From contig NIVC01003818.1 of assembly GCA_002269645.1 (NCBI GenBank), positions 1 to 41,656 on the forward strand: a stretch of 41,656 bases of DNA. Reading direction: 5' to 3'. The notes below the pieces were generated by a model, which was not told the DNA's origin, did not search any database, and saw nothing but the letters and a program-made list of their open reading frames with translations. This document shows, piece by piece, positions 9,177 to 41,656 of this stretch. The position numbers were made by a program, and so were the translations under genes. This DNA is from Macrostomum lignano. Taxonomy: Eukaryota. Position 1 is the stretch's first letter, and every line of letters begins with the position of its first letter.

Positions 9177-9225
9177 CTGCCACAATGAGGTTTAGGGGTT
9201 GGATCTGGCTCACAGTGTGCCCTGC

Positions 9226-9460: not shown

Positions 9461-9509
9461 AAGTTTCCAAGAACTTTGCAATCAATGGAAATTCCACAGA
9501 AGGCCTTAC

Positions 9510-9946: not shown

Positions 9947-10149
9947 CTGCGTGAGTTTTCATCGAATATCACTGAGTCCGAGAACCCGGGAGGATTTTCT
10001 CTTTCTTCACGATTTCATATCAGACCAATTCAACATCATGGAGTCGGGAAATCTGTGATGCGCCCAGCTACGGGCTCGCACCTACATTTAAAACGCGTTT
10101 TTATGTTTTTTAGAACGAGAGAACACAGTCCCAATCTCCGATAGTTTTA

Positions 10150-10731
<582 letters not shown>

Positions 10732-12398: not shown

Positions 12399-12864
12399 AA
12401 CAACAACAACAACAACAGAATACGCAGTTAGCGTCACAGGGCGCGCCTCAAGGCCAGATCACGAATAAACGCCACGCCGCCGGCCGAATCCGGGGCGCCG
12501 GCGTCAGCCAGCAGGCAGTCGACGAAACGCCGAGTGCGCGCCTGCCCCTGCCGGTAGGGTGCCTGCAACGCTAGCAGCAGCACCTCCTGCACCGGCTCTG
12601 GGCAGTGCGACTCGGCGCCGATGATGTGGCCTGCCAGCTAGAGTCGCCGACGGCGCAACAGGTCGCTTGGACGGACCAGGCCGGCGCGGTGATACAAAGC
12701 CGCGTCGGTCACTCGCTCGTAGCCGATCTTGAAGGAGGCGCGCAGCAGGCTAGCGTGCGCCACGTCAACTTGTTGCTCGAGCGACTCCGTCAGCGTCCAG
12801 GTCTCGGCGTTGTACAGCAGGACGGTCTCGATCACCGCCTGGAACAACGCCGCCCTCTGACGCT
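12399..12864 (-). mobile_element. RTE-type LINE, 3' portion with (TTG)n tail
   Basis: RQRAALFQAVIETVLLYNAETWTLT...RRRRL*LAGHI is a typical post-RT C-terminus of RTE-like LINEs, with an in-frame stop. The (CAA)n run at about 12398-12418 on + is the tail; TCACCTC at 12392-12398 is a TSD candidate. Confidence 0.8.
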
Positions 12865-13006
12865 TGTTGTGTGTTTGAATGTATTAGGAGTATTCGCGCT
12901 TGGCGAGACTGTGGGCGCAGCCACACACCCTTTACAAGTATATTTGAGTTTGTCCATAGACAATAATTTATGCATGAATAAGAAACTAAAGCGGCTGGCT
13001 GCAACA
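12865..13006 (-). mobile_element. 3' LTR of a Ty3/Gypsy (Mag-like) element, preceded by a polypurine tract
   Basis: TG...CA termini (142 bp). It matches 17306-17494 apart from 2 substitutions and a 47-bp indel. PPT GAAAAAAAGGGGGA lies immediately upstream on the minus strand (13007-13020). Confidence 0.92.
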
Positions 13007-13076
13007 TCCCCCTTTTTTTCAAAAGAACATTGTTCGTTAATTGCATAGTTTGTTCATAAACAAAAAAAATTCATCA

Positions 13077-16000: not shown

Positions 16001-16086
16001 GTATGCACGGCGTCTTTGTGCGAGAGTCGCAATTTAATCTTGCCCTTCACATTAAGCGTCTGATTGTTATACACTGATAGTCTGGT
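13077..16086 (-). pseudogene. pol: Ty3/Gypsy pol (protease C-half, RT, RNase H, integrase), disrupted
   Basis: RT (FDAKSGFHQ, YIDDIIVWG), RNase H (VDASKDGLGA, YAQIEKEMLA, SDHKPL) and integrase (HEGHQG..CDAC, ATDLF, DNGPPF, SNGLAERAVQ). In-frame stops at 15781 and 14950, and a frameshift near 14410. Confidence 0.95.
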
Positions 16087-17150
16087 TGATGTGTTCCTTA
16101 TTACCCGACTTCGGTAATCAAAGAACAATCACTTCTAGCTCTTTAGCTAGGCAACCCAGTAATCAAATGAAGGTATTCAATTACCTTTAATCCGGATTCT
16201 TAGATTTCGTTCTTGAGTCGTTCTCAACTGTAGATCTCTCAGTAGATCTCGTAGACTTCTAGACGTCTTCAGGTGTCAATCGGGTCCGAGTTTCCTTCTT
16301 CTCTCTTTTAGAAGTATTTCCGGCCGGAATCTGTCGTTCGGACCAATAGGAAGCTTCCAAATTAACAATGGGTACCCTGCGCCAAACTGCGGTCTTAATT
16401 AAGCCTCCTTCTTCTAGCAGTGCCTCTATGCACTCTAGGAATAGCTCCGGAAACCACTGATAGTCTTCTAAGATCTATCAGGGGCAGTCCTTCTGGAGAC
16501 TGCAACCAGTAGAGTCTAAACAGACTCAAGAGTCTCAACAGACTCAAACTAAACTCAAGTCACACTGGACTTGAGCGAGACGTCTCTAACAACAACAGGC
16601 GCAAATAAGGAAGGCTTTCCGCAACAACCGACCGAGTATTGGTCCAGGAAGTCCGACTGTGGCTTCCTCTTCGGAGCTCTTCTCCTTCCGGAGGAATTGT
16701 GGCTCCGGGTCCGTTCCGGACCACTTGTATTTATAGGCGTTCAGACCTCTCTCGAGGTCGTACATCACTGTCTTCGCAAATGTCAAAGGGTCACGATTCG
16801 GTGGCTGTCAAGCATGACAGGGTAGAAAGTTGCGCAACTAGTCTACTGTAAAAGCGCATGATTGGTTACCGTAGCTGGTAGACTTTGATTGGTTCATCCG
16901 GGTGCAACCCGAGTGCAAACCAAATGATGACTTGAAGGTGGGGTTTGAATTGACAGTTGTTGGTCGCACGTGATTGGGTGATTTCTAAAATTAGCATGCT
17001 CGAGGTCTCTCTCTTCCTATTGGTTAGTCCGAATATACTTATAGTTCAAAGCATACCTTTATTCATGCTCTTCAATTTACTACTAAATAAAATGTGTGAG
17101 TAGTACATTAACACTTTTATGTCTTCTTACGGGAGGTAGAACACTCTACA
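16087..17150 (-). mobile_element. Solo LTR of a second family (copy 1, 1064 bp)
   Basis: TGTAGAG...ACACATCA termini; inverted copy of 18643-19716; 4-bp flanks ACCA and GCTA. Confidence 0.85.
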
Positions 17151-20352: not shown

Positions 20353-21672
20353 ATTTCTATTGTGTCATACTTCGCGGGCCGCATCACTTTATTATAGTTA
20401 GCCTAGGCGTGTTGAAACGGGGAGAAACGCGCAGCATCCCGCCCGCTGCAATAAACTATGGCCAACTTCAATAAGTAAAAAAACTCGTATGCATATAAGT
20501 ATCTAGTTAATGTTTCTACAACTTGTATATTTTAAAAGTGAAGCTTAGTGCTGCTTAATAATTCTTAGCATCAGTTACTATTTTTTCAATTCGCAAAATA
20601 AGGAGTTTTGGCCACAGACATTTTTTTGGATTTCATTATTTCTTTCTTTGTCTTGTGTGCTGGTGGGCTCAGCGCCCCCTTGATCCCGCTTTCCTCTGAC
20701 TTTGCCATAGAAGTTTTCAGCGGGCCGTGAAACCGACTGAATGCATTGGAGTAAATGGGATTTTACCATAGACAGTCTCAGCGGCTCGTGAAACGCGGTT
20801 TCACGCCCACTAACTATAACACTAATATGGATCGGCGTTAAAGCTCGTTTCTGCCCTCTGCAGCCCATCAATATTGGTATATTTTGGCCCGCTCCTAGAT
20901 GCAGGGCTAAGCAAAGTATGCAGTTTTCGATATTCCATCTTTACCATAGACTATAATCCCGGGCCCAATCGTTGATTATGCCCGCAGCGTGGCTGAATGC
21001 AAAAACTGGGGTGGGGGGGCTTCGCCCCCACATTTTAACCATAGATAAAATCAACCAGAGTCTGACTACAGTTAAAGTAGTGGATATCAGAATTCTTTTC
21101 ATTCTGAATTTAACTTCGTTTTTTGTGAACCTACTGAGCTAGAGAGCTACTGAGCACGCGAAGGCGTATTCAGCATGCCAGTGAAGTATGAGACAGACTA
21201 GGCCCATGGGCTAAGGTCTGCGATGCTTCACGCCTGCCCCTATCTTCAGCAGGTCAAGGCTGGTGGGAGGTCTGCACCCTCTATTTGCCTCTGGCAGCCG
21301 CAGACCCCCCCCCCACGCTGTCTCGCAAGTCGACCCAGGGTACTCGTCCCCGCGTGTGTTCAAGGCAGTCCCTAGGGCTGCTGGACAGACTGGGCTCCGG
21401 CGCTGGCGACCCTATCCAGTGGCTTCGGCCGAATTTGGGTATGCGGGTCTGGCTCGCCAACCTGCAGGCCGTGGTACTGCTCAACGTACTCTCTAATGCC
21501 TAAGGTGTTGACCGTGCCGATGGGCTGGAAGGCCGGGGAGTAGTCCGGTCGCAAGCGGTCCCCCTCCTGGTGTCGGGCCAGCCTTGAGGGTGCTATTGGC
21601 CTACTGCCCGGTCAGGTGGAGCGGCCGGGTGGGTACCGCGCCCCTTTGAGGGTAGCCCACCAACCTTTTATC

Positions 21673-23193
21673 ATGGCCTTCGAGCCGACTATGGATAAAC
21701 AAGCTATTTCTAGGGACGGGGACCCTTCTAAACCCCAACCTCAGTCCGAAGGACCGGCCGGCCCTGCTGGCAGATCCCAACCGACTGATTCAACTGTGGC
21801 AAAGGAAGGACCGGCTGGCTCTGCTGGCAGATCCGACCAGAGCTACCAAACTCAAAATACCCTAAGACCTGCCAGCTCCGCTGGTGGATCTAAGGGAACC
21901 GCGAGCTCTGAGCCTAAAGGACCGGCCAAATCTGGCAGATCCGATGAAGCTCAGCGGGCTCGGCTTGAGCGCAAACGCGCTAAACAACGCGCCAAAAGGC
22001 AGGCCAAGAAGGGAGCTGCGGGGGCCAAAGCGGCGGCGTCCACCATGGATGCTGAAGCGACTGGAGTCCCAAGGCAACCAGGCGGGCCGGCCGGTGGAAG
22101 CTCCAGTAGTTCAGCGGCGGCGCTCCCTGGAGCTGCTGCCGCGGCTGCTGAGGCCGAAACCACGGCGCAACAAATGGCCACTGCCAACAAGGAGGTTCCT
22201 TCGGGAGCTACCTTTGCGGCGAAGGCCAAGGCCAAAATCCCGGGAGTGATCATCCAAGGTCGCGACCAGGACTGGACCACTGATCAGCTTCAAAAAGTGT
22301 GGAGTGCTGTTGACTCCTATCTGATTGAGCTGACTGTCGAGGAGGGAATCTCCATCGGCGTTGAGCGGATGGTGCTGCGAAGCACATTCGTTCTTATTGC
22401 TCCTAGCAGCGAGGAGGACGCTCGGCGGCTGCTCCAGCGGCTACCGACGGTCTCCTTGGATGCTGACCTTGGCGGAGCTCTTTTTCTTCGCGAGGGCCAG
22501 CGTCCAAAGACGATACCCTATGTGGTTTTCGTCCCTGCTAAGAGCACCGCAGCTGGACCAGACGTTATTCGCCGGGTCCTACTGCGTCTGAACCCCGACC
22601 TCCCTGCTAGTGGACTGGTGTATCACCGTAAAGTCCGCAGGGGGGAGACGGGCAACTCAATTGTCCTCGGCCTTTCCAGCACTTGGGCGAGTCGGTACCC
22701 TAATGGATCCTCTTTCCAGCTGGGTGCCCTCAAGCTCAAGTTGCGCCGAGGAAAGTCTGCCAAAGGGAAGGCTACTGCCAACCCCGGCATCTCCGGCAAG
22801 AGCGGGGCGCAGTCTAAGGCCCAAGGAAAGGCGCAAGCCGATCCCAAAGCCAAAGCTGCATCTCGCCCCTCTGCTAGCAGCAGTTCGGCGACCGCGGTAA
22901 CGGCTCCGGCCGAGCCCCGGGAACCAAACCTGCCAGTCGGAGAAGGAGTTGAGGACGAGGCCGGGTCTTCGGAATCCGAGCTCTCCTCGGCCACCTTGGT
23001 GGGGTCTGAAGGTAAAGATGCAGGTGAGGAAGCTTCCTCCATCCTGTCATCGGAGCCTGAGGACTCTGCTGGGGGGCCGGTGGGGGTGAGGAGGCCATGG
23101 ACGTCGACCAACTCCCATCTCCCAGTCAAGCCCCAGCGGCCTGGGACGAGGACGATCTGTTGTCCAAGTCTCCTTGATGGCCCTGGGCTCTAG
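21673..23193 (+). CDS. Non-LTR retrotransposon ORF1 (low-complexity N-terminus, basic coil, central domain); C-terminus probably frameshifted at G6 23071-23076
   Basis: Long ORF directly upstream of ORF2; first ATG at 21673 (track start 21616 is a GTG). Confidence 0.82.
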   Translation: MAFEPTMDKQAISRDGDPSKPQPQSEGPAGPAGRSQPTDSTVAKEGPAGSAGRSDQSYQTQNTLRPASSAGGSKGTASSEPKGPAKSGRSDEAQRARLERKRAKQRAKRQAKKGAAGAKAAASTMDAEATGVPRQPGGPAGGSSSSSAAALPGAAAAAAEAETTAQQMATANKEVPSGATFAAKAKAKIPGVIIQGRDQDWTTDQLQKVWSAVDSYLIELTVEEGISIGVERMVLRSTFVLIAPSSEEDARRLLQRLPTVSLDADLGGALFLREGQRPKTIPYVVFVPAKSTAAGPDVIRRVLLRLNPDLPASGLVYHRKVRRGETGNSIVLGLSSTWASRYPNGSSFQLGALKLKLRRGKSAKGKATANPGISGKSGAQSKAQGKAQADPKAKAASRPSASSSSATAVTAPAEPREPNLPVGEGVEDEAGSSESELSSATLVGSEGKDAGEEASSILSSEPEDSAGGPVGVRRPWTSTNSHLPVKPQRPGTRTICCPSLLDGPGL

Positions 23194-23216
23194 CCAGATA
23201 TTGCATTTAATACAGT

Positions 23217-26200
23217 ATGACTAAGCTCCACGCTGCCAAAGGAGCGACATTCTGTCTGCAAATAAATTTACAGCATTGCGTATCTGCGTCAGTAAATCTG
23301 ATGAAGATTGCTGAGCTGTACAGGCCAGGCCTCATCCTGATCCAGGAACCCTGGATGCGCAACGGTAAGTTGCCCAACATTCCCTCTGGCTACTCTGATT
23401 TTTATGTGTGTGGCCCGGGGAACAGCCGCCCTAGAGCGGCTATCCTCGCTGCTAGCCATCTCCAGGCTTGGCTGAGGACTGATCTCTCTGATGGAGACCT
23501 TTGCGTCATCCAATCTAATCATTTCTCTCCGCGTACGTGTCTTGTTGCCTCGGTTTATATCCCAGGCGACAGAGACCCTGCTCCCGAGAGTTTACTGCGC
23601 CTTGCGCAGTACTGCGAGTCCCAGAACGCTGAGCTGTGCTTAGGGGGCGACCTCAACGCGCACCACAAGCACTGGGGCAGCAAAGATACCAACACTAGAG
23701 GAGAGGAGCTTCTGGCCCTCATCTCTAACACAAACCTCATGCTCTGCAACCGCGGCAGCACTCCTACCTTTAATAATGGCAGATGGACCGAGGTCCTCGA
23801 CGCCACACTCGTTACCCCAAGACTCTTTGACAGAGTCAAGGAGTGGAGAGTCTGGTCTGAGGAGCCCTCCCTGTCTGACCACTGCTTTATCGCCTTTAAT
23901 ATCGCGGACACTAAAACCCAGTCTCCGATCACTTGGAGACGCAATATCCGCAACACTGATTGGGCGGCCTACAAGGCTGCCCTTGATCTGCACCTGCAGG
24001 AACTCACGGACTTACGTCCGATTGAGACCTGCGAGGATGTGGATCATATGGCTGAGACGCTGACAGGTTGCATTATTGCAGCCTACGAAGCGGCTTGTCC
24101 TGCTCGCGCCTACAGAGGCAAGACCTCGGCGCCGTGGTGGAACCCGGAGCTGGGGAAACTCAGGCGGAAGGCCAAAAGCCTTCATCGCCGTGCCATGAAG
24201 ACCGGAAACCCGGAGGACATGGAGCTTTTCCGGCAAGCCTCCCGCAATTTCAAATCTGAAGTGCGCAAGGCCAAGGAATGTAAGTGGCGCCAATTCTGCA
24301 ATGAATTGGATCAAGACAGACCTACTTCTAGGCTTGTCAAGGCCCTTACAATGGACAAAATGTCCAAATTAGCCATGATCAAAAAAGATGATGGCTCTCT
24401 TACTAAAGACCCTGAAGAAGTGCTTCAGCATATGCTTAGCACATTCTTCCCGAGGGTACCTACTGCTAGACCGGAGCCCAACCATTCGATGGATGGAGCC
24501 ACCCTAGCGGCGGGCATTGTCACTGAAGACCTAATCGCTCGTGCGGTCAGAACCTTCAAACCCTTCAAATCTCCTGGACCTGATGGTATCTACCCTGTTC
24601 TCCTTCGTGAAGCAGCCAAGATACCCTCGTTCCTGAGACTCACCCGCAATCTTATGCGGGCCTCTATCCAGCTGGGATACGTTCCCAAAAGCTGGACTGA
24701 AGCTCGAGTAGTCTTTATTCCCAAACCTGGGAAGGGTGACTACCAAAGCGTCAAGGCCTTCCGGCCAATTAGCTTAACGTCAGCAATGCTTAAGCTCACT
24801 GAGAGGCTTATTCTCTGGCGGCTGCTCTCCTGCGAGCTGACAGCGATGCCCCTCAGCAATAATCAGCACGCCTTCCGTACCGGGAGGTCGACTGACAGCG
24901 CCCTGCATGCGATTGTCGAAAAGATTGAACGGGCGGTACTGGGTGACGGTTACGCCCTGGCTCTCTTTCTTGACATTGTTGGCGCCTTCGACAACGTTAT
25001 CTTTGAAGCGTTTCAGAGGGCCCTTCAAAATCGCAAAGCTCATGCTACCCTCATACGGTGGATCATGTACATGATCTCCAACCGTACGGTCACTGCCCAA
25101 CTTCTTGGGCAAACTGCCTCCACCAGAGTCTGTAAGGGTGGACCCCAAGGCGGAGTCCTCACCCCGACGCTCTGGAACCTGGTCATGGACGCTCTTCTGA
25201 GTGACTCCCGACCTGACCCCGTCTTCAAAGTCGGGTATGCTGATGACGTCACGGCCATTGTGGCAGGACCGTCTCCCAGCACGCTCAGGGATCTGATGCA
25301 GAGCTTTATCCGCAAAGCAGAATCCTGGGCCAATGACAATGGTTTGGAACTCTCTGAGCCCAAAACCGTTGCCATTATGTTTACCAGCAGACTACGCTGG
25401 AACATACGTCCTCTGCAGCTCTACGGCAGAGATATTGCCTTCGCGCACCAGACCAGATGTCTCGGGGTCACACTTGACCACCGGCTCAACTGGTCCTTCC
25501 ACGTGAAAGCAAAAGCTAAGCGTGCCTCAGCCATCCTGGCCCAGCTCCGACGAGCACTTGGCACTTCTTGGGGTCTATCCCCAAAGCGGCTTTGGTGGAT
25601 CTATACTTCCGTAGTTAGACCTGCCATTACGTACGCCTCTGTTGTCTGGGTTAGCGCTACCCAGGTCAAAAGCCATGCAGACCTGCTCAACACGATCCAA
25701 GGCAGAGCGTGTAGGCTCATCTGCAACGCCACCAGGTCCACGCCCTTTGCTGGCATGGGGGCCTTTCTTAATCTTCCGCCTCTTGACCTCTTCATCAGGG
25801 GTGAGGCGGCTAGAACGACGCGGCGTCTAATTGATGCCGGCGTCAAATTCATTTACATGAGAGCACCTGCTAAGCGGAACCTTGTCCCGCATAGCGATCT
25901 GTGCCTCAACTTTCTCAACGAGTGTCAGGCCAATCGCGTCTTCACCGATGGCATTGCCTCAACGCTCAACCTGAGACAGCGCTACTCCGTAGCTATCGAC
26001 TCGCGCGATAACATCAATGACCATTGGAACCCTGGTGAGCTTCATTGCTACACCGACGGTTCTAAGCAGTCAGCCAACACCGGCTTTGGTGTTGGAATCT
26101 TTCTGAACGGGAGGGTCATCGCTACCCACGCTCAATACACTGGGGTCAACTCCAGTGTTTTCCAAAATGAAGTTCTGGCCATCAGCTCCTGCACTGCAGA

Positions 26201-26957
26201 GCTTCTCGCCACTGGCGTTACTGGTAAGAACATCATTTTCCATTCGGACAGCCAAGCTGCCTTGCACGCCATCAGTGGCTGCAGCACCAACTCTGCTACA
26301 GTCCTTGACTGTATCAAACTCCTCAATATGTTGGGTTCCGCCAACAAAATTACCCTTAAGTGGGTTCCGGGGCATGTGGGGATCCGAGGAAATGAGTTGG
26401 CTGACACCCTTGCAAAAGTTGGTGCCTCCGGCTCCTCTCTCGGCCCCGAACCTCTTGTCCCGATTCCTGGCTGTGTCATCGACTCGCGCATCAAAGCGTG
26501 GATCAGGACTCAGCACCGCTCGACTTGGGCGAACCGCACGAACTGCAGGCAATCCAGAGGCGCTGTCCCTCAGCCCTCTCACCAGCTCCGGAAGCTCCTC
26601 TTGCGCCTCTCGCGCAGAGACATCCGGGCTGCCACCATGACCCTCTCTGGTCACGGCTGCTTCTCCAGGCACCAGTACCTGCAGGGCAACGCCACCAACG
26701 CCACCTGTAGTTTCTGCAACTCAGGTGACGAAACCGCTGAGCATTTCGTCAGCATCTGTCCCGCCTTCACGCGGGCCAGACTCACTTACCTCGGGCCACA
26801 CACATCTATTACTGAAGCGTGCAAACCCGAAAACTTTAATCAGCTCATGCGCTACCTTCGGGCCACCCGCAGGGCTGAACTCTCCTTTCCAGAGAGCACC
26901 ATAGCTGCTGGCGACACTGGGGGACCTCCCTGGGCGGCGCCAACCCTCCGTCCATAG
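23217..26957 (+). CDS. Non-LTR retrotransposon ORF2: APE endonuclease, RT, RNase H and CCHC finger (1246 aa, intact)
   Basis: QINLQH..LIQEPW, GGDLNAHH..WGS, SDH; PGPDGI, RPISL, PQGGVLTP.LW, GYADD; YTDGS, VFQNEVLA, HSDSQAAL, WVPGHVGIRGNELAD; CSFCNSGDETAEHFVSIC. Confidence 0.96.
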   Translation: MTKLHAAKGATFCLQINLQHCVSASVNLMKIAELYRPGLILIQEPWMRNGKLPNIPSGYSDFYVCGPGNSRPRAAILAASHLQAWLRTDLSDGDLCVIQSNHFSPRTCLVASVYIPGDRDPAPESLLRLAQYCESQNAELCLGGDLNAHHKHWGSKDTNTRGEELLALISNTNLMLCNRGSTPTFNNGRWTEVLDATLVTPRLFDRVKEWRVWSEEPSLSDHCFIAFNIADTKTQSPITWRRNIRNTDWAAYKAALDLHLQELTDLRPIETCEDVDHMAETLTGCIIAAYEAACPARAYRGKTSAPWWNPELGKLRRKAKSLHRRAMKTGNPEDMELFRQASRNFKSEVRKAKECKWRQFCNELDQDRPTSRLVKALTMDKMSKLAMIKKDDGSLTKDPEEVLQHMLSTFFPRVPTARPEPNHSMDGATLAAGIVTEDLIARAVRTFKPFKSPGPDGIYPVLLREAAKIPSFLRLTRNLMRASIQLGYVPKSWTEARVVFIPKPGKGDYQSVKAFRPISLTSAMLKLTERLILWRLLSCELTAMPLSNNQHAFRTGRSTDSALHAIVEKIERAVLGDGYALALFLDIVGAFDNVIFEAFQRALQNRKAHATLIRWIMYMISNRTVTAQLLGQTASTRVCKGGPQGGVLTPTLWNLVMDALLSDSRPDPVFKVGYADDVTAIVAGPSPSTLRDLMQSFIRKAESWANDNGLELSEPKTVAIMFTSRLRWNIRPLQLYGRDIAFAHQTRCLGVTLDHRLNWSFHVKAKAKRASAILAQLRRALGTSWGLSPKRLWWIYTSVVRPAITYASVVWVSATQVKSHADLLNTIQGRACRLICNATRSTPFAGMGAFLNLPPLDLFIRGEAARTTRRLIDAGVKFIYMRAPAKRNLVPHSDLCLNFLNECQANRVFTDGIASTLNLRQRYSVAIDSRDNINDHWNPGELHCYTDGSKQSANTGFGVGIFLNGRVIATHAQYTGVNSSVFQNEVLAISSCTAELLATGVTGKNIIFHSDSQAALHAISGCSTNSATVLDCIKLLNMLGSANKITLKWVPGHVGIRGNELADTLAKVGASGSSLGPEPLVPIPGCVIDSRIKAWIRTQHRSTWANRTNCRQSRGAVPQPSHQLRKLLLRLSRRDIRAATMTLSGHGCFSRHQYLQGNATNATCSFCNSGDETAEHFVSICPAFTRARLTYLGPHTSITEACKPENFNQLMRYLRATRRAELSFPESTIAAGDTGGPPWAAPTLRP

Positions 26958-30814: not shown

Positions 30815-31924
30815 ATGAGGCCGCTCCAAGCAACGCTGGCTGCAGCCCTGCTGCTGGCCTTCTGCGCCGGCTTCAATGCCGAATCAATCATCGGAACCGT
30901 TCAAGTGATGTACTCCGGCTACAAGTTCAATGGCTTGAAGGTGAACGCCTCCGGAGTAAACGAGTCGAAAGAAATTCACCGATTTCTCAGCATTCCGTAC
31001 GCTCAGCCGCCCACCGAAAACCGGCGGTTCGCCAAGCCCGAAGCGCTGGACTTCAGCAGAGACGTCCAAATCGATGCCAAAGAGCAGCCTCCGCTGTGCC
31101 CGCAGGACAACTCCACCAAGAGCCTGCCGTACAGCGAGGACTGCCTGTACATGAACATCTGGTCGCCTGACACCACCTCGGGTACCAAGTACCCCGTGCT
31201 GGTCTACATCCACGGTGGACGCTTCGAGACTGGCGGCATCGCTGAGCCGGAGTACCAGGGCGAGACCCTCGTGCGAAATCAGAACATCGTCTTTGTGACA
31301 ATCAACTACCGACTGGGCGCCACTGGCTTTCTCTACCTGGATTCGACACTGATGCCAGGTAACTTCGGCCTGTTGGATCAGCGCCTGGCTCTGAAGACGA
31401 TCACTGATATGATAAGTGCTTTCGGCGGAGACCCGAACAGAATCACCCTGGCCGGCCACGGAACCGGCTCCGCTTCTGTCGGGTTCCACATCGCCACTCA
31501 AGATGTCCCGGTCACCCGTGCGGTGATGATGGGCGGCTCGCACCTCATGCCCCTGGTCTGGTCGAACGACATCGATGCAGTGAGGGGCGTTAGTGAGCGC
31601 TTTGCGAACATTCAGCTGAACTGCGCTCGTGGGGAGGGCAAGCTTCAAGAGGTGATCGAATGCCTGCGAAATGACATCTCCATTGAGAAGCTGATCGAAG
31701 AGCAGAAGAACTACGAGAAGCTCTACATTTCGCTCGAGTTCATGCCCGTGCTGGACAAAGAGTTCTTTAACTTTATGGACCCGCTAATAACTTGGGGCGA
31801 GCGCCGTAAGAACGTCACTTTGCTGATGGGCGTCACCGCTGACTCCGGAATCGAGTTCGCCCTCAACTCGCTGCGCACTCGCAACCTGACCACCGACATC
31901 CTCAACCGCGATGTGTACTACGAG
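30815..31924 (+). CDS. Multi-domain cholinesterase-like protein, exon 1 (signal peptide plus most of domain A1)
   Basis: MRPLQATLAAALLLAFCAGFNA signal peptide; FLSIPYAQPP, SEDCLYMNIW, YIHGG, NYRLG, GNFGLLDQ, FGGDPNRITLAGHGTG; donor GAG|GTGAGT (phase 0). Confidence 0.92.
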
Positions 31925-31959
31925 GTGAGTAGCTTTTCCTATGCTAGGCGAATGTCCCC

Positions 31960-32375
31960 GCGGATATTGTTCATCCGGCTATCCAAGACCACCTGCTCTG
32001 TTGTAACAGTTGTTGCGACATTGAGCAAACTCAGCAGTTTTAAATTATTGATCGTTGTAGGACTGACTTTAGGCTCAATATACTTAAATTCATGTACATT
32101 AAAAACCAGAAACCAAATCTGACACATTCAACTTTCTCACAGTGGTGCGGGCCATTTACTCAAGGTATTCTAAGTGAAGGCACAACCCGATCATTGTACT
32201 CGCAATCTCTGCTCACTTACTCTGAACATTCTGCCCCTGATATGCCCTTGGACTGTACAGTAAACATTTGTTCTCTATTTATCTCTTATAAAAGTTGTTG
32301 CGTGAGTGAATATACATCAGACCCTGAAGATGGCCCTTGTTGGACCGAAACGCTATGGAAGAATTTAATCTAACT
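31960..32375 (+). mobile_element. Penelope-like element 3' remnant (GIY-YIG C-terminus plus hammerhead-like motif) in intron 1
   Basis: Translates as AIQDHLLCCNSCC...F*IIDRCRTDFRLNILKFMYIKNQKPNL, a typical PLE C-terminus. It is followed by TATAAAAG and CTGAAGA..GG.CC..GGACC-GAAAC (32324-32351). Confidence 0.65.
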
Positions 32376-32477
32376 TAATCTACGAGCTATGTTGATTTTC
32401 ACATTTATTTTCCATTGTTCGTTTACTTGTAAATCAATAAGCCTCATCCTCACCCCGCCTTGCCCGTCCCGCCGCAG

Positions 32478-32886
32478 ATCCTGCGCCAGCAGTTCGTGCA
32501 CTACCCCCGCTTCCCCACGGCGCTGGATGACACCGGGCTGAAATTCCTCCAGCTGTCGCACACCGAGTGGAACGACGCCCAGAACAAAGAGCTGCTGCTG
32601 AAAAAATGGTCCGAGGCTCTGGGCGACTTCAGCTTTCTCTGCCCGACCCTCTACGCCCTGTTCGATGATGACAGGCCGCAGCCGGGAGAGGACATGAACG
32701 CCTACCTGTACTACTTCGGTGCTCCGGACCCGTTTAGGGACAACGAGGCGCCCGGACACGTCAACGATGTGCGCTACTTCCTTGGCGTCCCGGACGGCCC
32801 TGGCCTCCCGTACCCGAGCGAGCACAACGAGCTGGCCAAGCGCATGATGGAGGATCTGGCCAACTTTGTCACCACCGGAAGGCCGA
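32478..32886 (+). CDS. Cholinesterase-like gene exon 2 (domain A1 C-terminal part)
   Basis: Acceptor CCGCAG|ATC; GDFSFLCP, GHVNDVRYFLG, FVTTGRP; donor A|GTGAGG (phase 1). Confidence 0.85.
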
Positions 32887-33067
32887 GTGAGGAAATTGTT
32901 TAGAATATGAATTTCAAAGGAAACAGCCCATTCCAGTAAATGTCAAATCCTCCTAGAATGAACTGAATTTCCTGCCATTCCTACAGCAGTGGGTAATCCA
33001 ACTCACACCCACTCTCATTGCCTCCTTTGCATTCTTATGACGAATTTTTCGCGGACTCTCAGCCCAG

Positions 33068-33574
33068 TCAAACCCAGCGCTAAATGGCAACCCCGGGATT
33101 TCACACACACAGACAACAACTGGCGCAGCGTGATCGCCGGGGACTGGAACTACAACAGCTACCTGCCGGTGCAGGACCCCGGCCTCTACGGCTTAACTGG
33201 CGGCTTCGCCATCCGCCGCTGCCGCTGGTGGTACGACACCCTCAGCTTCGTGAACCGCCTCGTGCCGGGCGACTCTGCAAAGCCGATGAGCCCGCTGCGG
33301 CAGGACCCGTTTCTGCTGGACGGCAGCACCATCGGTGCGGCGCCGGCCCGCTCGAAGCCGCAGCAAGAGGCTGCCGCCAACAATTTCCAGCCCACATCCG
33401 CGCAAATCATTGACAATGCCACTGTGGAGCTCACCGAGGTCGGCGCCACTGTCAGGGGGCACCGGCTCTCCGCGAACGGGAAGGAGATTGAGCGATTCCT
33501 CGGCATTCCGTACGCGCAGCCGCCAACCGGCGATCTGCGATTCGCGAAGCCGGCTCTGAAGGACATTGCGAACG
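33068..33574 (+). CDS. Exon 3 (end of A1, linker, start of domain B1)
   Basis: Acceptor CCCAG|TC restores TGRPIKPSAKWQP; RCRWW; ERFLGIPYAQPPTGDLRFAKP; donor G|GTGAGT (phase 1). Confidence 0.82.
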
Positions 33575-33909
33575 GTGAGTTACATTAAACATTGCAGCTG
33601 CAAGAAAAAGAGGCAGATCAAGGTTTTCGGTCCGAAAGTCAAACCCACAAGCAAAGATGAGAAAAAATATTCTGACAATTCAGCAGAATAAGCCAGCTCA
33701 TTTTTTTATAAAACAGTTTGCAGACTACAAAATTTCGCTTAGCCAAATCCAACGAAATTTCGTTACATCCAACGAAAGCCTTCTACTGCCAAAATGCTAT
33801 TAAATAATTGCTAGCAATTATTTCCTATCTTCCTATATCTCATATTTCCCATATCTTCCTATCTCGCCATATCTCGAAATTTGGAGGATTTTCATGTGTA
33901 GCGTCCCGC

Positions 33910-34640
33910 TGCTGCAGTTGTTCATGTACCTGTGCAATATTAACAGTTGTTCATGTACCTGTGCAATATGAACAGTTGTTCATGTACCTGTGCAATATAA
34001 ACAGTTGTTGATGTACCTGTGCAATATGAACAGTTGTTCATGTACCTGTGCAATATAAACAGTTGTTGATGTACCTGTGCAATATTAACAGTTGTTAATG
34101 TACCTGTGCAATATGAACAGTTGTTCATGTACCTGTGCAATATTAACAGTAGTTCATGTACCTGTGCAATATGAACAGTTGTTCATGTACCTGTGCAATA
34201 TGAACAGTTGTTCATGTACCTGTGCAATATGAACAGTTGTTGATGTACCTGTGCAATATGAACAGTTGTTCATGTACCTGTGCAATATGAACAGTTGTTC
34301 ATGTACCTGTGCAATATTAACAGTAGTTCATGTACCTGTGCAATATTAACAGTTGTTCATGTACCTGTGCAATATTAACAGTTGTTCATGTACCTGTGCA
34401 ATATTAACAGTTGTTCATGTACCTGTGCAATATGAACAGTTGTTCATGTACCTGTGCAATATGAACAGTTGTTCATGTACCTGTGCAATATTAACAGTAG
34501 TTCATGTACCTGTGCAATATTAACAGTTGTTCATGTACCTGTGCAATATTAACAGTAGTTCATGTACCTGTGCAATATGAACAGTTGTTCATGTACCTGT
34601 GCAATATGAACAGTTGTTCATGTACCTGTGCAATATTAAT
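33910..34640 (+). repeat. 29-bp minisatellite (TGTACCTGTGCAATAT[G/T]AACAGTTGTTCA), about 25 copies, in intron 3
   Basis: Direct periodicity. Confidence 0.96.
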
Positions 34641-35626
34641 CAAGGACCACTAGCAGTATATATACTCAGCAACATCGAAAAGTCGCCATCACAGATCCGT
34701 CTGTGATCGCCGCTTTTGAGAGTGCAGGTAGTCTCTCAATCTTTGCGAGTGACGCAACTTAAATACGCCGCGGCAGACTTGAGTTGAGAAATGAAGTGGG
34801 GGAGCTGTGTGCGAGGGTTGGACGGATTAAAGCTACCCCGATGAGTTTTCTCGCATCTTTTATTTCAGAATGGTCCAAGAGAAATTGCTCACTGGCGCAT
34901 AGAGTGGCGACTTTTCAATGTTGCTGAGTATACTTCTTAGAACATTTGAATTTTGCTCCAATGTTAGAAAATTTTCAAGCGCGCAGCGACACAAACTCAG
35001 CTGGCCCGCAGGCATAAAAACCCTGCCGAGGGAGGGGGGTGGGCGCAAGCCGGGGGTTGGCGGTGTACACAAAACCCGGTTAGTGCTGGCAGCACAAACC
35101 AGTTCAGAAGGTCTGTGCAGAGGACGGCGTGTGGCTGAGGCTGACTCAAGCCAGACAACTGTCTCAGTCTGCCTGCGCGAGGTTTGACCCCCACTTTTAG
35201 TGTGTCACAAGACACTTTCAAAACGAGAAAAATTCGTCGAAATAAATTTCTTAGGAAAAATCACAAATAAAAATCACAATACCAACAACTTGTAAAGCCG
35301 CATTGGATAAAAGCATGCTGGCTTCAATTAATTTATCACCGGTAGTATGGAAGGTACGCTCGTAGTTTTGGGCTACAGGCTCTTAATGACTCCATCATTA
35401 GTTTGAAATGGCACTGGGTCTTCAAGTAAATTTATTAAAGCCTTTCGATTTACGCTCAAAACAGAAAAATGCACTTTTAGATTTTATCAGCGACCTTCCA
35501 ATGTCAGAATCTTCCAGATAGTTCCGACTTCTGCCCCTTCTGCAAGCTGTAGAAGTCCTTTCCTCAATTCCAAAAGCACTCCTGTTGAGCATCGCATAAT
35601 TCTTATTTCTTCAATTTACTTTGCAG

Positions 35627-36483
35627 CTACCATCGATGCGCAAACGATGCCTAAGGCGTGTCCGCAGGCGTGGAATACGACCTTGGAAGAGGACGAGGAC
35701 TGCCTCTACCTCAACATCTGGACTCCGAGACCTAGCCTGACAGCCAATGAGTCTCAGCAGGTCCCCGTACTGGTGTACATTCACGGTGGCTTCTTCGAAG
35801 TCGGAGGCATCAACGATCCGTACCGGAGTGGCGAGAAGATTGTCGAGCTGCAGGACGTCGTCGTGGTTACCATCGGCTACCGACTGGGAGTTCTGGGATT
35901 CCTGCCCTTCTCGGCCGAGGGCAGCCGCGGAAACTTTGGCCTCTTCGATCAGGAGATGGCGCTCAAATGGGTGGAGGCGAATATTCACCACTTCGGTGGC
36001 AACGCCAGTCTCATCACCGCCGTGGGCGACGACGCCGGAGCCGTGTCCATTGGCTACCACCTGATCCGCAACGAGACCCGGATCTCCAGGGTGATTCTCC
36101 AGACGGGCAGTCCGTCTATGGCCTATCCCCTGAACAACGACACCGATGGCACCCGCATGCGCATCGAACAATACCTGCAGCTAATGGGATGCAACAACAG
36201 CACCACGGACGCCCAGTTGGCTTGCATGCGGGCCAAGTCCGTGTCGGATATCAACAGTGTCTACACTAACGAGTTCGCCAACAAGTTCGGTCCGGAGGCC
36301 CTGGTCACAGTCGACGGAGACTTTCTCAAGGAGGACCCGTGGCATTCGGTGCAGCAGGGCGACATGTCCCAGGTGCCCATGATCGTCGGATTTGTCGACA
36401 GGCCGGGAAATGAGATCATCAACCGCAGGATTCGCTTCGGCGAGCTGGACTTGGCAAACATTTCTTATGATGAAGTGCTGCAG
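35627..36483 (+). CDS. Exon 4 (domain B1 core)
   Basis: Acceptor TTGCAG|CT; CPQ..EDCLYLNIW, HGGFF, GNFGLFDQ, ITAVGDDAG; donor CAG|GTAAGG (phase 0). Confidence 0.9.
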
Positions 36484-36564
36484 GTAAGGCCTCTAAAATA
36501 TGTGGGTGAGTTTTATAAGTACTCGTAGATGAATAATTCACTATGCAACCATAAACACTTGCAG

Positions 36565-36847
36565 AACATCGTTAACGCATCATACTACAACCCGAGGCTA
36601 CCTAAGGAGCTGAAGCAGCCCGGAGCCACGCTGATCGGGATGCAATACCGACCGCCGCTTCTGCATAGGCAGGTGCTGATTGACAGCCTTAGTGAGGCCT
36701 ATAGTGACCGCTTCTACACCTGCGGAAACAACGAATACCTGCAGCAAGTGATCTCTAAGCGGCATCCGCTTGATGCATTCCTATATCACTATGTGTTCTC
36801 CGAGAAGTCCAATGTTGAAAATATTACATCCGATGGAGCAAGCTTGT
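36565..36847 (+). CDS. Exon 5 (domain B1)
   Basis: Acceptor TTGCAG|AAC; SDRFYTCG, FLYHYVF; donor T|GTAGGT (phase 1), at the position homologous to the exon 10 donor. Confidence 0.82.
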
Positions 36848-36944
36848 GTAGGTGCCATTTTATTGCATTTTTATTAGCAGCCGAAAAAAAATCAATCCAA
36901 AAAAACCAAATAAATCAATATATATTCACAAATCTACTCTACAG

Positions 36945-38299
36945 CCGAGGACACCTTCTATCTCTTCGGAAATCCTTTGCAAGGACCTGAGTGGAACGAT
37001 GAACAGAAGAGTCTGTCCGAAAAGATGATCGAATTATTCACGCACTTCGCCGAGACAGGAAATCCCAATCCTGAAAACAGTCTCGACCTGTGGTGGGAGT
37101 ACACGGCAAATCTAAAGCCCTACCTTGTGCTCGATGCGCAGGTGCACAATGTGTCGGTAAATTGGGGCTTCCGGATTAACGACTGCGGATTCTGGCAGGA
37201 GGTTCTTCCCTACGTCAATGAGCTGAAGGAGCCGCCGGAACCAACCAGGCCTCCGATCGGACCAGAGGGAGAAATTATCGATGAAATCATCATTGAAATC
37301 GACCTCGGAAGAACGCAAAACAGGATCAGCATCGCCGGAGACGTGGTTCGACTAGCAAACGGAAAGATCATCAAGCGATTCCTGGGTCTGCCCTATGCGG
37401 AAATGCCTCTCACTCGGTGGAGCTACGCTTCATTTCCGAAGGGTGGCAACTACACAGCGAAGTCTATGCCACCAGCCTGTCCGCAAACCATCAATCCAGT
37501 TCCGGAAAGAAGCATGTCTGAGGATTGTCTGTACATAAACGTCTTTTTTCCAAACGATACTTCAACGACGTACCCGACAGTAGTGTTCCTGCACGGTGGG
37601 AACTACACGAGTGGAGCTAACAGTCTGCCAGAGTATCGAGGTGAGCAGCTTCTCGAGAACGAGGACGTTATTCTCATCACCGTCAACTACCGACTGGGCG
37701 CGCTCGGCTTCCTGTTCCTGGACGACGAGAAGCTGCCCGGAAACTTCGGTCTGATGGACCAACGGCTCGCTCTCGACTTCATCCAAAGAGTGATTCCCTT
37801 TTTTGGAGGCAGCAGGACGCAGATCACTCTGATGGGTCACGGGACGGACGCCGCGTCGGCCGGCTTCCATGCTGTCACGGATTCGAAGGACTTCTTCGAC
37901 CGGATGATCTTGATGGGCGGATCTCCGTCGATGCCGCTGGCTTGGTCGAGCTCGACTCAGAAGGTTCTTGAAGATAGCGAGCATTTTGTCAATGTTCAAC
38001 TCGAATGCGCAAGAGGCCCACTTGATTCGGTTTTGGAGTGTCTGAGAAATCTTACATTGGATAAGATCATGACGGAACAGCTGAACATGCAGCACTCGAG
38101 AGATCACTTGGTATTCCTGCCCGTGTTCAATCAGTCGTTTTTTAACTACACGCACCCGTACGACGCTTGGTCCAAGGGCGAGATGGACAAGCCGTACATG
38201 ACAGGCGTGGGCTCAGACTCTGGTCGCTACTACATCGAGCAGTCGCTGGCTCGACGGAACATCTCCTGGGAGTCGCTGAACCGAACTATTTTCGAAAGG
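36945..38299 (+). CDS. Exon 6 (end of B1, Pro-rich linker, most of domain A2)
   Basis: Acceptor CTACAG|CC; EDTFYLFGNP, DCGFW, PTRPPIGPEG; RFLGLPYA, SEDCLYINV, ITLMGHGTD; donor AGG|GTAAGA (phase 0). Confidence 0.9.
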
Positions 38300-38394
38300 G
38301 TAAGAAAAACTAACTGTTTTGAGCTATTTAAAATAACGGAAAACATAATAACTCATTGAGAATATGATTGAAATGCAAATGGCAAACGTTCCAG

Positions 38395-38794
38395 ATCGTG
38401 GAGCTGCAGTTTAACTACTTCCCCCGCTTCCCGGAGAGGAACACGGCTACCGGAATTCAATTCCTCAAGCTGGCCCTCACTGAGTGGAACTACTACGACT
38501 ACAACAAGCGGATCAAGGCTATCTGGTCCAGGGCGATGGGTGACTTTAACTTTCTGTGCCCCATCTGGGAGGCCACGAGCGACCTACTGAGGGCCAAACA
38601 GCACGACATTCACATGTACTACATAGATGTGGAGGACCCGTTGCGGGTACAGGAGGATCTGATCGGTGCTGACCACTGGGGCGACATCCGCTACCTGTTT
38701 GGCGAGCCGCTCAGGAAGGATTTGTACCCGGAGGTTCACAAGAACCTTTCCCGACTGATGATGCACGACTTTGTCCAGTACATTGGGGGATCAG
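38395..38794 (+). CDS. Exon 7 (domain A2 C-terminal part)
   Basis: Acceptor TTCCAG|ATC; GDFNFLCP, DHWGDIRYLFG; donor G|GTGAGA (phase 1). Confidence 0.86.
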
Positions 38795-39219
38795 GTGAGA
38801 GCCAAAAAACGTTAGGGAAGCGTAGTACGATTTTATTTTCAATTATTTCCTATTTCAAAGAAAGACTTTCGTCAGCAGAATTTCTGCATAAGAAGAAAAA
38901 CAGAAGATAGGAGTAAAGAAAACCTGGACCACTGACTTTTAAACCGAAATGCATATTGTGTCCATCTTAAATGCTTGGTTGGCCATAAATTCAATTTAAG
39001 CATCGTACTCGTAGCGTAGTTTTAAACAGTGTTTTAATCAAAGTTTGAAAAAATATTTTTGTACGAGCTAGCTATTGACTACCAATATGCAAGAAAAGTT
39101 TAAAAAAATCAGACATATCGATCATGCTGTTCTGTAGAGTTTGTTTAAATGACCACTTGATAGTGCTCATATTAAGTGCTGTTTTCATGTACAGAGCAAG
39201 CTGTCTTCCCAATTTGCAG

Positions 39220-39689
39220 CACCATCTCACTGGAATGCAACAAGCCAGGAGACGTCAGACTTTCTACTGTACGACATCCTGCAAACGGACTCCGGCGGTC
39301 CGGGAAACCTGGTCTCTGTCATGGTGCCGGACGGTTTCGGCCTGAACACTGGCCGGTGCCCGCTCTGGAAAAACGAGCTGCCCTACGTCAAATCGTTTGT
39401 CAGCGCCCCCTTCCAGGAAGAAGAGACTTCGAAAATAACGTCAGTGCAAGCAGAAAGCGACCAGCAATCGGAAAGACCAGCAGCGTAAAAGACGAATCGG
39501 AGTTTAATCTCTACGAAGTCGTGTCGAACTATACTGTGGACGTTCCCGGCTTCGGCAAGGTGACGGGGCAGACCATCATGACTCTGTCGAACAATATCAC
39601 CATGTCCCAGTTTCTCGGAGTTCGGTATGCGCAGCCGCCTGTCGGAAATCGTCGATTGGCAAAGCCAGTGAAGCCACATACAACATCAG
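39220..39689 (+). CDS. Exon 8 (end of A2, linker, start of B2); contains a frame break at about 39480-39488
   Basis: Acceptor TTGCAG|CA; frame 1 gives GFGLNTGRCPLWKNELPYV up to TAA at 39486. FLGVRYAQPPVGNRRLAKP is in another frame. Donor G|GTGCAC (phase 1). Confidence 0.72.
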
Positions 39690-39783
39690 GTGCACATTTT
39701 CATTAATTTTGAGCCAAATTTATAATAGTTACTCCATATAAAACAATGCATTTAACCTAAACATTTTTATATCTCAATTCCAG

Positions 39784-40634
39784 ACTCAAAGCATTTGGCA
39801 CTGACAATGCCGCCAATGTGCATCCAGAGAGAGCATCACAACCGGAACATGTCTGAGGATTGTCTCTACCTCAATATTTGGACTCCAAGACGCGCTGGCA
39901 GGAACGTGAATGACATCCCCGTGCTTGTTTTTATTCATGGAGGCTTTTTTGAAGTCGGAGGTATTAGCGAGGATCGCTGGCAGGGAAGCATGATCTTGGA
40001 TCACTACGATGCAGTCGTGGTTACCATGAACTACCGACTTGGAGCTTTCGGCTTCCTGTCACTCGACAACAAGGAGGTGATCGGAAACTACGGTCTGTGG
40101 GATCAGGAGATGGCCTTGCAGTGGGTGGCCGATAACATTGAGAGCTTCGGCGGCAACAAGAACCGCATCACCCTGATGGGCGTGGAGGCTGGCGCCGTGT
40201 CGATCGGTTACCACATGGCCAGGCCAAAGCAGAACCGGTTTCACCAGGTCGTCCTCATGACCGGCTCTCCGTACATGTCCTACCCGCTGTCGGATGACAT
40301 TGAGGAAGTGCGTGACCTGCAATACAGCTTTTTGCGAAGACTGCGATGCCCAGTCGACCCAGCTGAAGCTCTAGAGTGCATTCGGAGTCAACCGGCTGAT
40401 TCAATTAATGAGCAGCAGGACGTGTTCCAGCAACTGTTCCAGCGGCTTGAATTCCCACCCATTATTGATGGCGACTTCATCAGGTTGGATCCTTGGACGA
40501 TGGACCCGAGCACACTGATGCAGGTGCCCATGATATTCGGAGGAGTGGACCGACCTGGAAACACGTTTATCGAAAGACTGGTGGACACTGAGATCCTTGT
40601 GCCAGAGAACTTTAGTCATAACGCGTACTTAACG
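39784..40634 (+). CDS. Exon 9 (domain B2 core)
   Basis: Acceptor TTCCAG|AC; SEDCLYLNIW, HGGFF, GNYGLWDQ, ITLMGVEAG; donor ACG|GTGAGT (phase 0). Confidence 0.9.
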
Positions 40635-40886
40635 GTGAGTAATTATCTTTAAAGTTTTATGCAATCTGAAAATTCAATTGTGTCAGGAATTTCACTCACG
40701 TATTTTTTACCTATAAAGACAACATTTATCAAAGTTTTCTTACGTACGAGCTATCAATAAATAAAAAGTAATGGATGCCCTTTAATAGCTCGTACTCATA
40801 ATGTTAATATTTTTTGCTCAGGACGTCTCAAAAACCGCACACTTTAATTCAATCCAAAAGAACAAGTCGGTACTCTGAACTTTTAG

Positions 40887-41175
40887 ATTCTGCAAAGCAT
40901 GAACGAATTCTTCCCGAGATACCCCAAGAGCATGACTGTGTCCGGGCGGACGGGCCTGCGCAACCACTTCATGCAGTACAACGGACAGGGCAATTTTGAG
41001 CGGGATCTCAGAGACCTAGGACTAGCGCTCAGCGATCGCTACTTCACCTGCGCGAATAACAAGTTCCTTGATGCGTACTCCAAAGCCTCGGGCAAGCCTG
41101 TTTACAATTATCTGTTCACTGAGGGCAAGGAATACAAGGGAGACACAGAGCTTCCCCTGCAGCATGCAAGTCTTT
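40887..41175 (+). CDS. Exon 10 (domain B2)
   Basis: Acceptor TTTTAG|ATT; SDRYFTCA, VYNYLF; donor T|GTGAGT (phase 1). Confidence 0.86.
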
Positions 41176-41297
41176 GTGAGTCGAAAGCTGCAGTATTGAT
41201 TTTCGTTTTCTCTCACAGCATTTTAAAGTCAAACTGCTTAAGCTCGTAAACTTAAAAGCTTAAGAATCTGCAACACTTATTAATTTTTCCCTTTCAG

Positions 41298-41656
41298 TCG
41301 AGGACGCATTCTATGTGTTCGGCAATCCCTCCAGCCCCGGTCCAATTGTGCCAGACCAACAGCGGCGGCTGTCCGACGCCATCATGCACGCCATCGTTCA
41401 GTTTGCTCGAACCGGCCGTCCATCCGACCTTTTGAAATGGGACCCGTACGACTCTGAGAAGAAGTCACATCTGCTGCTCGACGCCGACCATCTCCCTCCG
41501 ACGATGTATCCTGATGGGTACAGGAGACAGGAGTGCGGCTTCTGGGACCACACTTTACCGTTCGTCAACAGCCTGAACGACACTGCGCCGCCGCCGACCA
41601 GACCTCCGATCGGTCCCGATGGCGGCATTATTGAGGAAATCATCATTGAAATCGAC
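41298..41656 (+). CDS. Exon 11 (end of B2 and second Pro-rich linker); open at the window edge
   Basis: Not in the ORF track. Acceptor TTTCAG|TC; EDAFYVFGNP, FARTGRP, ECGFW, PPPTRPPIGPDGGIIEEIIIEID; no stop before 41656. Confidence 0.88.

Follow-up and report, generated by a model that had tools for sequence, protein, structure and literature searches.

Cholinesterase-like domains that have lost their catalytic residues are a classic case of an enzyme turned into a binding module, known from the neuroligins and from thyroglobulin, with one such domain per chain. In the neuroligins the nucleophilic serine is replaced by glycine, and gliotactin, neurotactin and glutactin likewise have an extracellular, non-catalytic cholinesterase-like domain. 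Here, we analyze a gene that would encode a protein of this kind in a stretch of 41,656 nucleotides from the flatworm Macrostomum lignano (contig NIVC01003818.1 of assembly GCA_002269645.1, positions 1 to 41,656 of the forward strand), called the window in the following. Domains of two types, A and B, alternate in this gene, and the window holds the first four of them (A1-B1-A2-B2), the A domains having the same glycine for serine replacement as the neuroligins. A complete Ser-Glu-His triad is absent from all four, and each type shows its own pattern of loss.

The closest solved relatives of these domains are acetylcholinesterase (AChE) and butyrylcholinesterase (BChE), with E-values of 1e-50 to 1e-61 and ca 30% identity. 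The domains share the core and the three disulfides of these enzymes, with template-modelling (TM) scores of 0.83–0.89, but they have neither the triad, nor the third oxyanion glycine, nor the 28-residue loop, nor the gorge, and they are repeated many times per chain. They are thus members of the type-B carboxylesterase/cholinesterase structural family PF00135 by profile match, superposable fold and disulfides, while the triad, the intact oxyanion hole and the aromatic gorge of its active members are missing.

On the basis of the results presented below, we consider it likely that the gene encodes a large, signal-peptide-bearing extracellular protein, in which catalytically dead A and B domains of the cholinesterase fold alternate and play a binding or scaffold role, with the A-B pair as the unit that was multiplied. 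The class of cholinesterase-like pseudo-enzymes is already known, but the alternating, highly repeated architecture with two domain types is new. Literature searches on Macrostomum esterase-like proteins, and on cholinesterase-like or carboxylesterase domains that occur in tandem or in multiple copies, gave nothing relevant.

Catalytic Positions and Predicted Structures

An initial annotation, made from the sequence alone, had proposed that all four domains are pseudo-enzymes and that the A and B types are inactivated in different ways. It had read the four nucleophile elbows (GHGTG, GDDAG, GHGTD and GVEAG, see Table 1) as devoid of serine, and this is confirmed by HMMER alignments, by a census of hidden Markov model (HMM) columns and by AlphaFold2 models. 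The alignments were made to solved cholinesterases, that is, Torpedo, human and other AChE/BChE chains, and the positions in them are given in Torpedo AChE numbering. Opposite Ser200, Glu327 and His440, high-confidence columns of the phmmer/HMMER alignments place Gly, Ser and His in both A1 and A2, and Asp, Pro and Leu in B1, which aligns over its full length with human AChE (E = 6e-61). The census, using an HMM built from active enzymes and M. lignano domains, gives the same residues for these three domains, and Glu, Pro and Leu for B2.

The motifs previously assigned to the catalytic acid, DSG in the A domains and RPG in the B domains, are present, with Ser (A) or Pro (B1) facing Glu327. The histidine is kept in the A domains and lost in the B domains, as had been claimed, and the sequences ASLSED and ASLFED given for the latter are exact once the introns are removed. 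In both cases a phase-1 intron interrupts the codon that follows the leucine (36848-36944 in B1, where T/CC gives Ser, and 41176-41297 in B2, where T/TC gives Phe). The claim that the HGG loop is retained holds only in part, since the third oxyanion glycine, the equivalent of Gly119, is Arg or Asn in the A domains and Phe in the B domains.

The three disulfide pairs, on the other hand, are indeed retained, the six aligned cysteines being found in all four domains. The loop between Cys67 and Cys94, which carries Trp84 in AChE, has 15–17 residues compared to 28, and the residues of the aromatic gorge, the acyl pocket and the peripheral site are lost, a tryptophan being aligned to Trp84 in B1 only. 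Because of the shortened loop and the lost aromatic lining, whatever pocket remains cannot be a gorge of the AChE type.

AlphaFold2 models were considered for A1 and B2. The modelled B2 sequence is identical to that of the window, while the A1 sequence is the version of the UniProt entry A0A1I8G704 (see below), with few substitutions relative to the window. The A1 model has a predicted local distance difference test (pLDDT) value of 86.5 and a predicted TM-score (pTM) of 0.92, and its TM-score to human AChE is 0.85; for B2 the pLDDT is 90.3, the pTM 0.93 and the TM-score to AChE/BChE 0.86–0.89. In a Foldseek comparison with the PDB, the best 50 matches of each model are all AChE or BChE, with TM-scores of 0.83–0.89. 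A structural placement of a serine at the elbow was looked for in these models, but the one residue that makes up the turn between the central strand and the next helix is Gly194 in A1 and Glu187 in B2. Taken together, the alignments, the census and the models suggest that the A and B domains are catalytically inactive and that catalysis was lost differently in the two types.

Gene Structure

Long open segments on the plus strand between 30.7 and 41.7 kb each match PF00135, with Pfam E-values of 1e-68 to 1e-83 for the main exons, which means that this is not a chance pattern. The DNA is eukaryotic, with fragmented reading frames, and the segments are joined by splicing into the exons listed in Table 1. 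All ten introns are of the GT-AG type, 81–2052 nt long, with donors that are GTRAG-like or GTGCAC and pyrimidine-rich YAG acceptors. The GC content at third codon positions in the exons is 0.66–0.78, which fits coding sequence, and the gene model is 99–100% identical to A0A1I8G704. For exon 3, the upstream acceptor was also considered; it would add 42 residues with two extra cysteines, while the one adopted, which is that of the UniProt model, fits the other domains better. The 2052-nt intron of B1 contains ca 25 copies of a 29-bp tandem unit (33915-34636, 96% identity).

Intron positions and phases are equal in A1 and A2 (phases 0 and 1) and in B1 and B2 (phases 1, 0 and 1), one phase-0 intron being common to the A and B domains. 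The window gene also has a phase-0 intron in common with the paralogue PAA79323.1, discussed below. The predicted signal peptide, read directly from the sequence, consists of a basic n-region and a hydrophobic core, with small residues preceding the cleavage site, and the first 1778 residues of the encoded protein contain 29 N-x-S/T sequons.

All four domains described in the initial annotation are found, but the window cuts the gene and four is therefore a partial count. The motif of the B1-to-A2 linker recurs after B2 at the very end of the window, which indicates that a further A domain follows outside it. The full gene has at least four A-B units.

Table 1. Coordinates of the esterase-like gene, its exons, domains and catalytic positions in the window, and of the two paralogue copies on another contig.
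Feature	Position	Strand	Remarks
Multi-domain cholinesterase-like gene (partial, 5' part)	30815..41656	+	11 exons joined at GT-AG sites
Predicted signal peptide	30815..30880	+	MRPLQATLAAALLLAFCAGFNA
Exon 1	30815-31924	+	other in-frame ATG upstream at 30749
Exon 2	32478-32886	+	
Exon 3	33113-33574	+	alternative acceptor at 32987
Exon 4	35627-36483	+	
Exon 5	36565-36847	+	
Exon 6	36945-38299	+	
Exon 7	38395-38794	+	
Exon 8	39220-39689	+	holds the frameshift
Exon 9	39784-40634	+	
Exon 10	40887-41175	+	
Exon 11	41298-41656	+	open at window end
Domain A1	30881..33264	+	two introns; Pfam PF00135 E = 3e-81
A1 shortened Cys loop	31097-31144	+	
A1 elbow	31454-31468	+	GHGTG
A1 acid position	31835-31849	+	TADSG
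A1 histidine position	32751-32768	+	PGHVND, His kept
Domain B1	33424..37228	+	three introns, one of 2052 nt; Pfam E = 2e-68
B1 elbow	36025-36039	+	GDDAG
B1 acid position	36394-36414	+	VDRPG
B1 histidine position	36835-36952	+	Leu, GASL/S/ED
B1-to-A2 linker	37229..37303	+	EPPEPTRPPIGPEGEIIDEIIIEID; motif recurs after B2 at 41585-41656
Domain A2	37322..39401	+	two introns; Pfam E = 3e-83; aligned to Torpedo AChE
A2 elbow	37835-37849	+	GHGTD
A2 acid position	38210-38224	+	GSDSG
A2 histidine position	38668-38685	+	ADHWGD, His kept
1-nt frameshift, A2-B2 linker	~39436..39485	+	in exon 8; one base missing compared to the UniProt model
Domain B2	39530..41578	+	three introns; Pfam E = 8e-77
B2 elbow	40179-40193	+	GVEAG
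B2 acid position	40545-40565	+	VDRPG
B2 histidine position	41163-41305	+	Leu, HASL/F/ED
B2-to-A3 linker	41585..41656	+	APPPTRPPIGPDGGIIEEIIIEID; reading frame still open at window edge
Paralogue copy at locus L001 (numbering of L001)	10001-17010		NIVC01000640.1
Paralogue copy at locus L002 (numbering of L002)	3001-11101		NIVC01000640.1

Relatives in Macrostomum lignano

The top match of the window gene is A0A1I8G704, an M. lignano protein of 3380 residues (E = 0, 2071 bits), which was found by an exhaustive search of 1.84 billion protein representatives with exon 6 as the query and which already exists as an unreviewed automatic UniProt entry named 'COesterase domain-containing protein'. When the query was a spliced B1-A2 sequence or exon 6, word-indexed protein searches gave nothing but esterases of 25–41% identity and a fragmentary M. 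lignano model (P0299). Three ORFs of the window and A0A1I8G704 had no exact match in the contig collection. B2 is identical to A0A1I8G704 at all 568 residues, and over the 1753 positions aligned from A1 to A2 there are 17 differences, in addition to gene-model gaps. The window copy is thus from another haplotype, homeologue or assembly version.

Pfam finds eight COesterase stretches in A0A1I8G704. Beyond B2, the protein continues with a partial A3 and with B3, followed by A4, with Gly, Thr and His at the three catalytic positions, and B4, with Glu at the elbow, the model itself being truncated. Apart from overlapping general α/β-hydrolase models, no other domain families were found by Pfam in this protein and its paralogues.

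In the databases searched, the A and B signatures were found only in M. lignano proteins. Further carriers are A0A1I8I8B3 (A-B), A0A1I8F227 and the pair PAA79323.1/PAA79327.1, the latter two consisting of a signal peptide, one A and one B domain, a Pro/Thr-rich, mucin-type stalk, a transmembrane helix and a short tail. This A-B-stalk-transmembrane paralogue is present as two inverted copies, more than 90% identical, within ca 45 kb on NIVC01000640.1 of the same assembly, and its A domain is far more degenerate than those of the window, having lost the HGG motif and the first Cys loop.

The residues at the type-specific positions were counted over five A and five B domains from three to four M. 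lignano genes. His-Gly is found at positions 199-200 in all five A domains and His at 440 in four of them, the two histidines being kept together in 4/5. In the B domains, position 200 is Asp or Glu (5/5), 119 is Phe (5/5), 327 is Pro (3/3) and 440 is Leu (4/4). The proposal of conserved pocket residues specific for each type is hence supported, as the replacements recur in other A and B domains of the species. This also means that they are old and retained, and not a result of recent decay. The different pocket residues would fit with A and B binding different partners, and the two binding specificities suggested in the initial annotation are in this sense a possible reading.

Selection

A1 and A2 are 40% identical and B1 and B2 41%, while the identity between A and B domains is 27–33%. 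Using the Nei-Gojobori method, the proportions of nonsynonymous (pN) and synonymous (pS) differences were calculated to be 0.42 and 0.66 for A1/A2 (z = 8.2), and 0.41 and 0.67 for B1/B2 (z = 8.8). The Jukes-Cantor-corrected ratio of nonsynonymous to synonymous substitution rates (dN/dS, omega) between window domains of the same type is ca 0.37–0.39, which is to be taken as an upper bound as dS is near saturation. The recent paralogue pair PAA79323.1/PAA79327.1 (L001 and L002 in Table 1) has, in its A domain, a dN of 0.011 and a dS of 0.058, which gives an omega of 0.19.

Apart from the one frameshift, ca 2345 codons are free of stops, the probability for this to occur by chance being ca 1e-49. 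The fold is under purifying selection despite the loss of the triad. The earlier suggestion to this effect agrees with the single frame disruption, with a pN far below pS (z > 8) instead of the neutral pattern of a decaying gene, with the retained cysteines and with the confident AlphaFold2 models. Neither multiple frame disruptions nor an omega near 1, as for a decaying pseudogene, were found.

Comparison with Other Tandem and Non-Catalytic Proteins

The paralogue PAA79323.1 resembles the neuroligins in its layout of ectodomain, stalk, transmembrane helix and tail, but it has two cholinesterase-like domains. Neuroligin-type proteins have a single such domain, whereas the window gene has two divergent types in alternation and in multiple copies, with at least four domains in the window and eight matches in A0A1I8G704. 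Neither a neurexin-binding nor a PDZ motif is apparent. In thyroglobulin, a single cholinesterase-like (ChEL) domain is located at the C-terminus, after Tg type-1, type-2 and type-3 repeats, none of which are found by Pfam in A0A1I8G704 and its paralogues. Thyroglobulin is a very large secreted protein, in which the ChEL domain is catalytically dead and serves in folding and dimerisation (PMC10578121).

Membrane proteins with two cholinesterase-like domains in tandem also occur in echinoderms, hemichordates and a nemertean, the second or both of the domains being without the triad (for example Acanthaster XP_022079595.1, Saccoglossus XP_006825066.1, Lytechinus XP_054767789.2 and Lineus XP_064622620.1). 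Among the sequences collected, P0255, P0257, P0261, P0263, P0266, P0269 and P0258 form a conserved, unnamed group of this kind, with two such domains and a transmembrane segment in ca 1150–1200 residues. These proteins and the M. lignano A/B proteins are uncharacterised.

In a neighbour-joining tree, which is rough, without bootstrap and without any neuroligin among its sequences, the M. lignano A domains, B domains and single-domain transmembrane forms make up a clade of their own, apart from the true AChEs. Domains 1 and 2 of the two-domain proteins, which have just these two domains each, group apart from A and B. For the echinoderm and hemichordate proteins, no pairing of domains with A and B is seen in this tree, and an A-B layout inherited from them was therefore rejected. 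The separate grouping makes the A/B split and the tandem multiplication look internal to the lineage. Judging from the sequences, the tandem layout probably arose independently, and tandem dead cholinesterase-like domains would thus have evolved more than once.

Alternative Explanations

It is important to consider the frameshift in the linker between A2 and B2. The frame that contains the conserved C-terminal Cys-x-x-Trp motif of A2 meets a TAA at 39483-39485, and B2 lies in the -1 frame. If the deletion is real, the gene could be a recently disabled pseudogene, with translation ending after A2, at 1778 residues, and with the downstream domains decaying. An intron that restores the frame would speak against this, but in a complete list of the GT-AG pairs of suitable length, none resembles the ten real introns, and none is credible. 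However, at this linker A0A1I8G704 reads ...TSKITVSASRKRP..., compared to which the window, with ...ATAAC-GTCAGT..., is one base short, and the residues ...EEETSKITVSASRKRPAIG... of A0A1I8G704 require ACN GTC where the window has ACGTC. A missing base in such a context (GG to G, ACG GTC versus ACGTC) is typical of errors in long-read assemblies. Moreover, B2 and the next linker are fully open, the 568 residues of B2 being those of the intact-frame A0A1I8G704, and there is no second stop or frameshift in the ca 2345 codons. Since everything downstream is intact and identical to A0A1I8G704, the frameshift is probably an assembly indel, and we regard a pseudogene as quite improbable.

Another scenario is that the domains are active by an unconventional mechanism, in which the Asp or Glu at the B elbow would be the nucleophile, or the histidines of the A pocket would take part in metal-dependent chemistry. 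Haloalkane dehalogenases and epoxide hydrolases use Asp as the nucleophile, and the acidic residue is present in every B domain counted above, just as His199 and His440 persist in four of the five A domains. The surroundings of these residues fit poorly with this idea, though. In the B domains, the general-base histidine is replaced by Leu and the acid by Pro, and the oxyanion hole contains Phe. In the A domains, the nucleophile is replaced by Gly and the acid residue is absent, and elements of the substrate gorge are missing. We know of no precedent for such chemistry in the type-B carboxylesterase family either, and consider this scenario very unlikely. The probability is lower still for the remaining alternative, namely that the four domains are several adjacent tandem genes, fused in the gene model. 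Such fusions are probably behind many multi-domain carboxylesterase models of other species, where most of the multi-domain matches from other phyla keep Ser, Glu and His in every domain, and a Lineus protein (P0242) has internal segments resembling signal peptides, which is consistent with fused tandem genes. In the window, each domain boundary instead lies inside one exon (exons 3, 6, 8 and 11) with the frame uninterrupted, which argues for one gene and not for a fusion of neighbors. In addition, no internal Met followed by a signal peptide is present, and the B-to-A linker is conserved.

Proposed Role

We now return to the non-catalytic protein with alternating domains. In this proposal, a single M. 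lignano gene would give rise to a very large extracellular protein that can be heavily N-glycosylated, with A-type and B-type domains in alternation. Each domain keeps the α/β-hydrolase core and the three disulfides without having a working triad. In the A domains, His-Gly replaces the Glu-Ser of the enzymes, the acid position is taken by Ser or Thr, and the histidine is in place. In the B domains, the nucleophile is replaced by Asp or Glu, the oxyanion hole contains Phe, and Pro and Leu are found at the acid and histidine positions, respectively. In both types, the Cys67-Cys94 loop is shortened and the aromatic gorge gone. With the triad and the gorge lost and the fold kept, non-catalytic binding or scaffold modules are the most likely function, similar to the neuroligins, the thyroglobulin ChEL domain and other cholinesterase-like adhesion molecules. 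The extracellular location is suggested by the signal peptide, the sequons, the disulfides and the neuroligin-like layout of the sister gene. The A-B pair would be the evolutionary unit, occurring once in the paralogue, where it is carried by a mucin stalk and anchored in the membrane, and tandemly multiplied here.

A number of points weigh against this proposal. The support consists of genomic sequence and predicted models. The window stops short of the 3' end of the gene, as does the truncated UniProt model, such that a secreted and a membrane-anchored protein are both possible. A chemistry other than ester hydrolysis could underlie the conservation of the acidic residue at the B elbow and of the two histidines in the A pocket. 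With dS between the paralogous window domains near saturation, omega can be given as a bound of ca 0.37 or less, and for the B domain of the paralogue pair it is based on 12 changes only. Finally, the frameshift would, if real, end the translation after A2.

One can speculate that A and B together form a pseudo-dimer within a single chain, in imitation of the cholinesterase homodimer. A more far-reaching version, which we find unlikely but worth stating, is that A-B is a head-to-tail fused, dead mimic of the cholinesterase or neuroligin homodimer, concatenated at least four times into an extracellular scaffold of megadalton scale, in which the A and B pockets bind two different partners. Should the pair prove to be an intramolecular pseudo-dimer with two sites, it would be a natural system for studying how the dimer interface and the pocket of the cholinesterases are repurposed.

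The fold is here used as a repeat unit, with two co-evolving dead types in strict alternation, at least eight per chain, under purifying selection. If the more far-reaching version above is correct, the A-B scaffold would be a lineage-specific adhesion or matrix system of macrostomid flatworms, in which the α/β-hydrolase fold is put to a new architectural use. With regard to annotation, what would be a non-enzyme is concealed behind the label 'COesterase domain-containing protein', and the sequence of the gene in the assembly probably contains an indel error. M. lignano is a tractable laboratory flatworm, amenable to RNA interference, in situ hybridisation and transgenesis, so the question of the pseudo-dimer is testable.

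Other Features of the Window

Ca 4 kb upstream of the esterase-like gene there is a non-LTR (long terminal repeat) retrotransposon of the LINE (long interspersed nuclear element) type at 21616-26957 (+), with two intact open reading frames (ORFs). ORF1 has 525 residues and no Pfam match, and ORF2 has 1246 residues with AP-endonuclease, reverse transcriptase and RNase H domains; the element may be young and active. Pieces of the pol region of a Ty3/Gypsy-type LTR retroelement, with reverse transcriptase, RNase H and integrase in broken and differing frames, are located at 13077-16128 (-), and this element looks degraded. The first 6 kb of the window are GC-rich (57%), and the ORFs there have no family matches; on the minus strand, tandem repeat arrays at ca 50-730 and 5270-5975 produce ORFs that are long and repetitive but artificial, with units PAPSQSLLHP... 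and CLCVCSLLVCLL.... Finally, a gene similar to p70 ribosomal S6 kinase, with two exons, is found at 9420-10677 (-). Its best matches are unnamed ENA proteins (70%) and the annotated M. lignano S6K (66%), and it is either a divergent paralogue or an unannotated gene.

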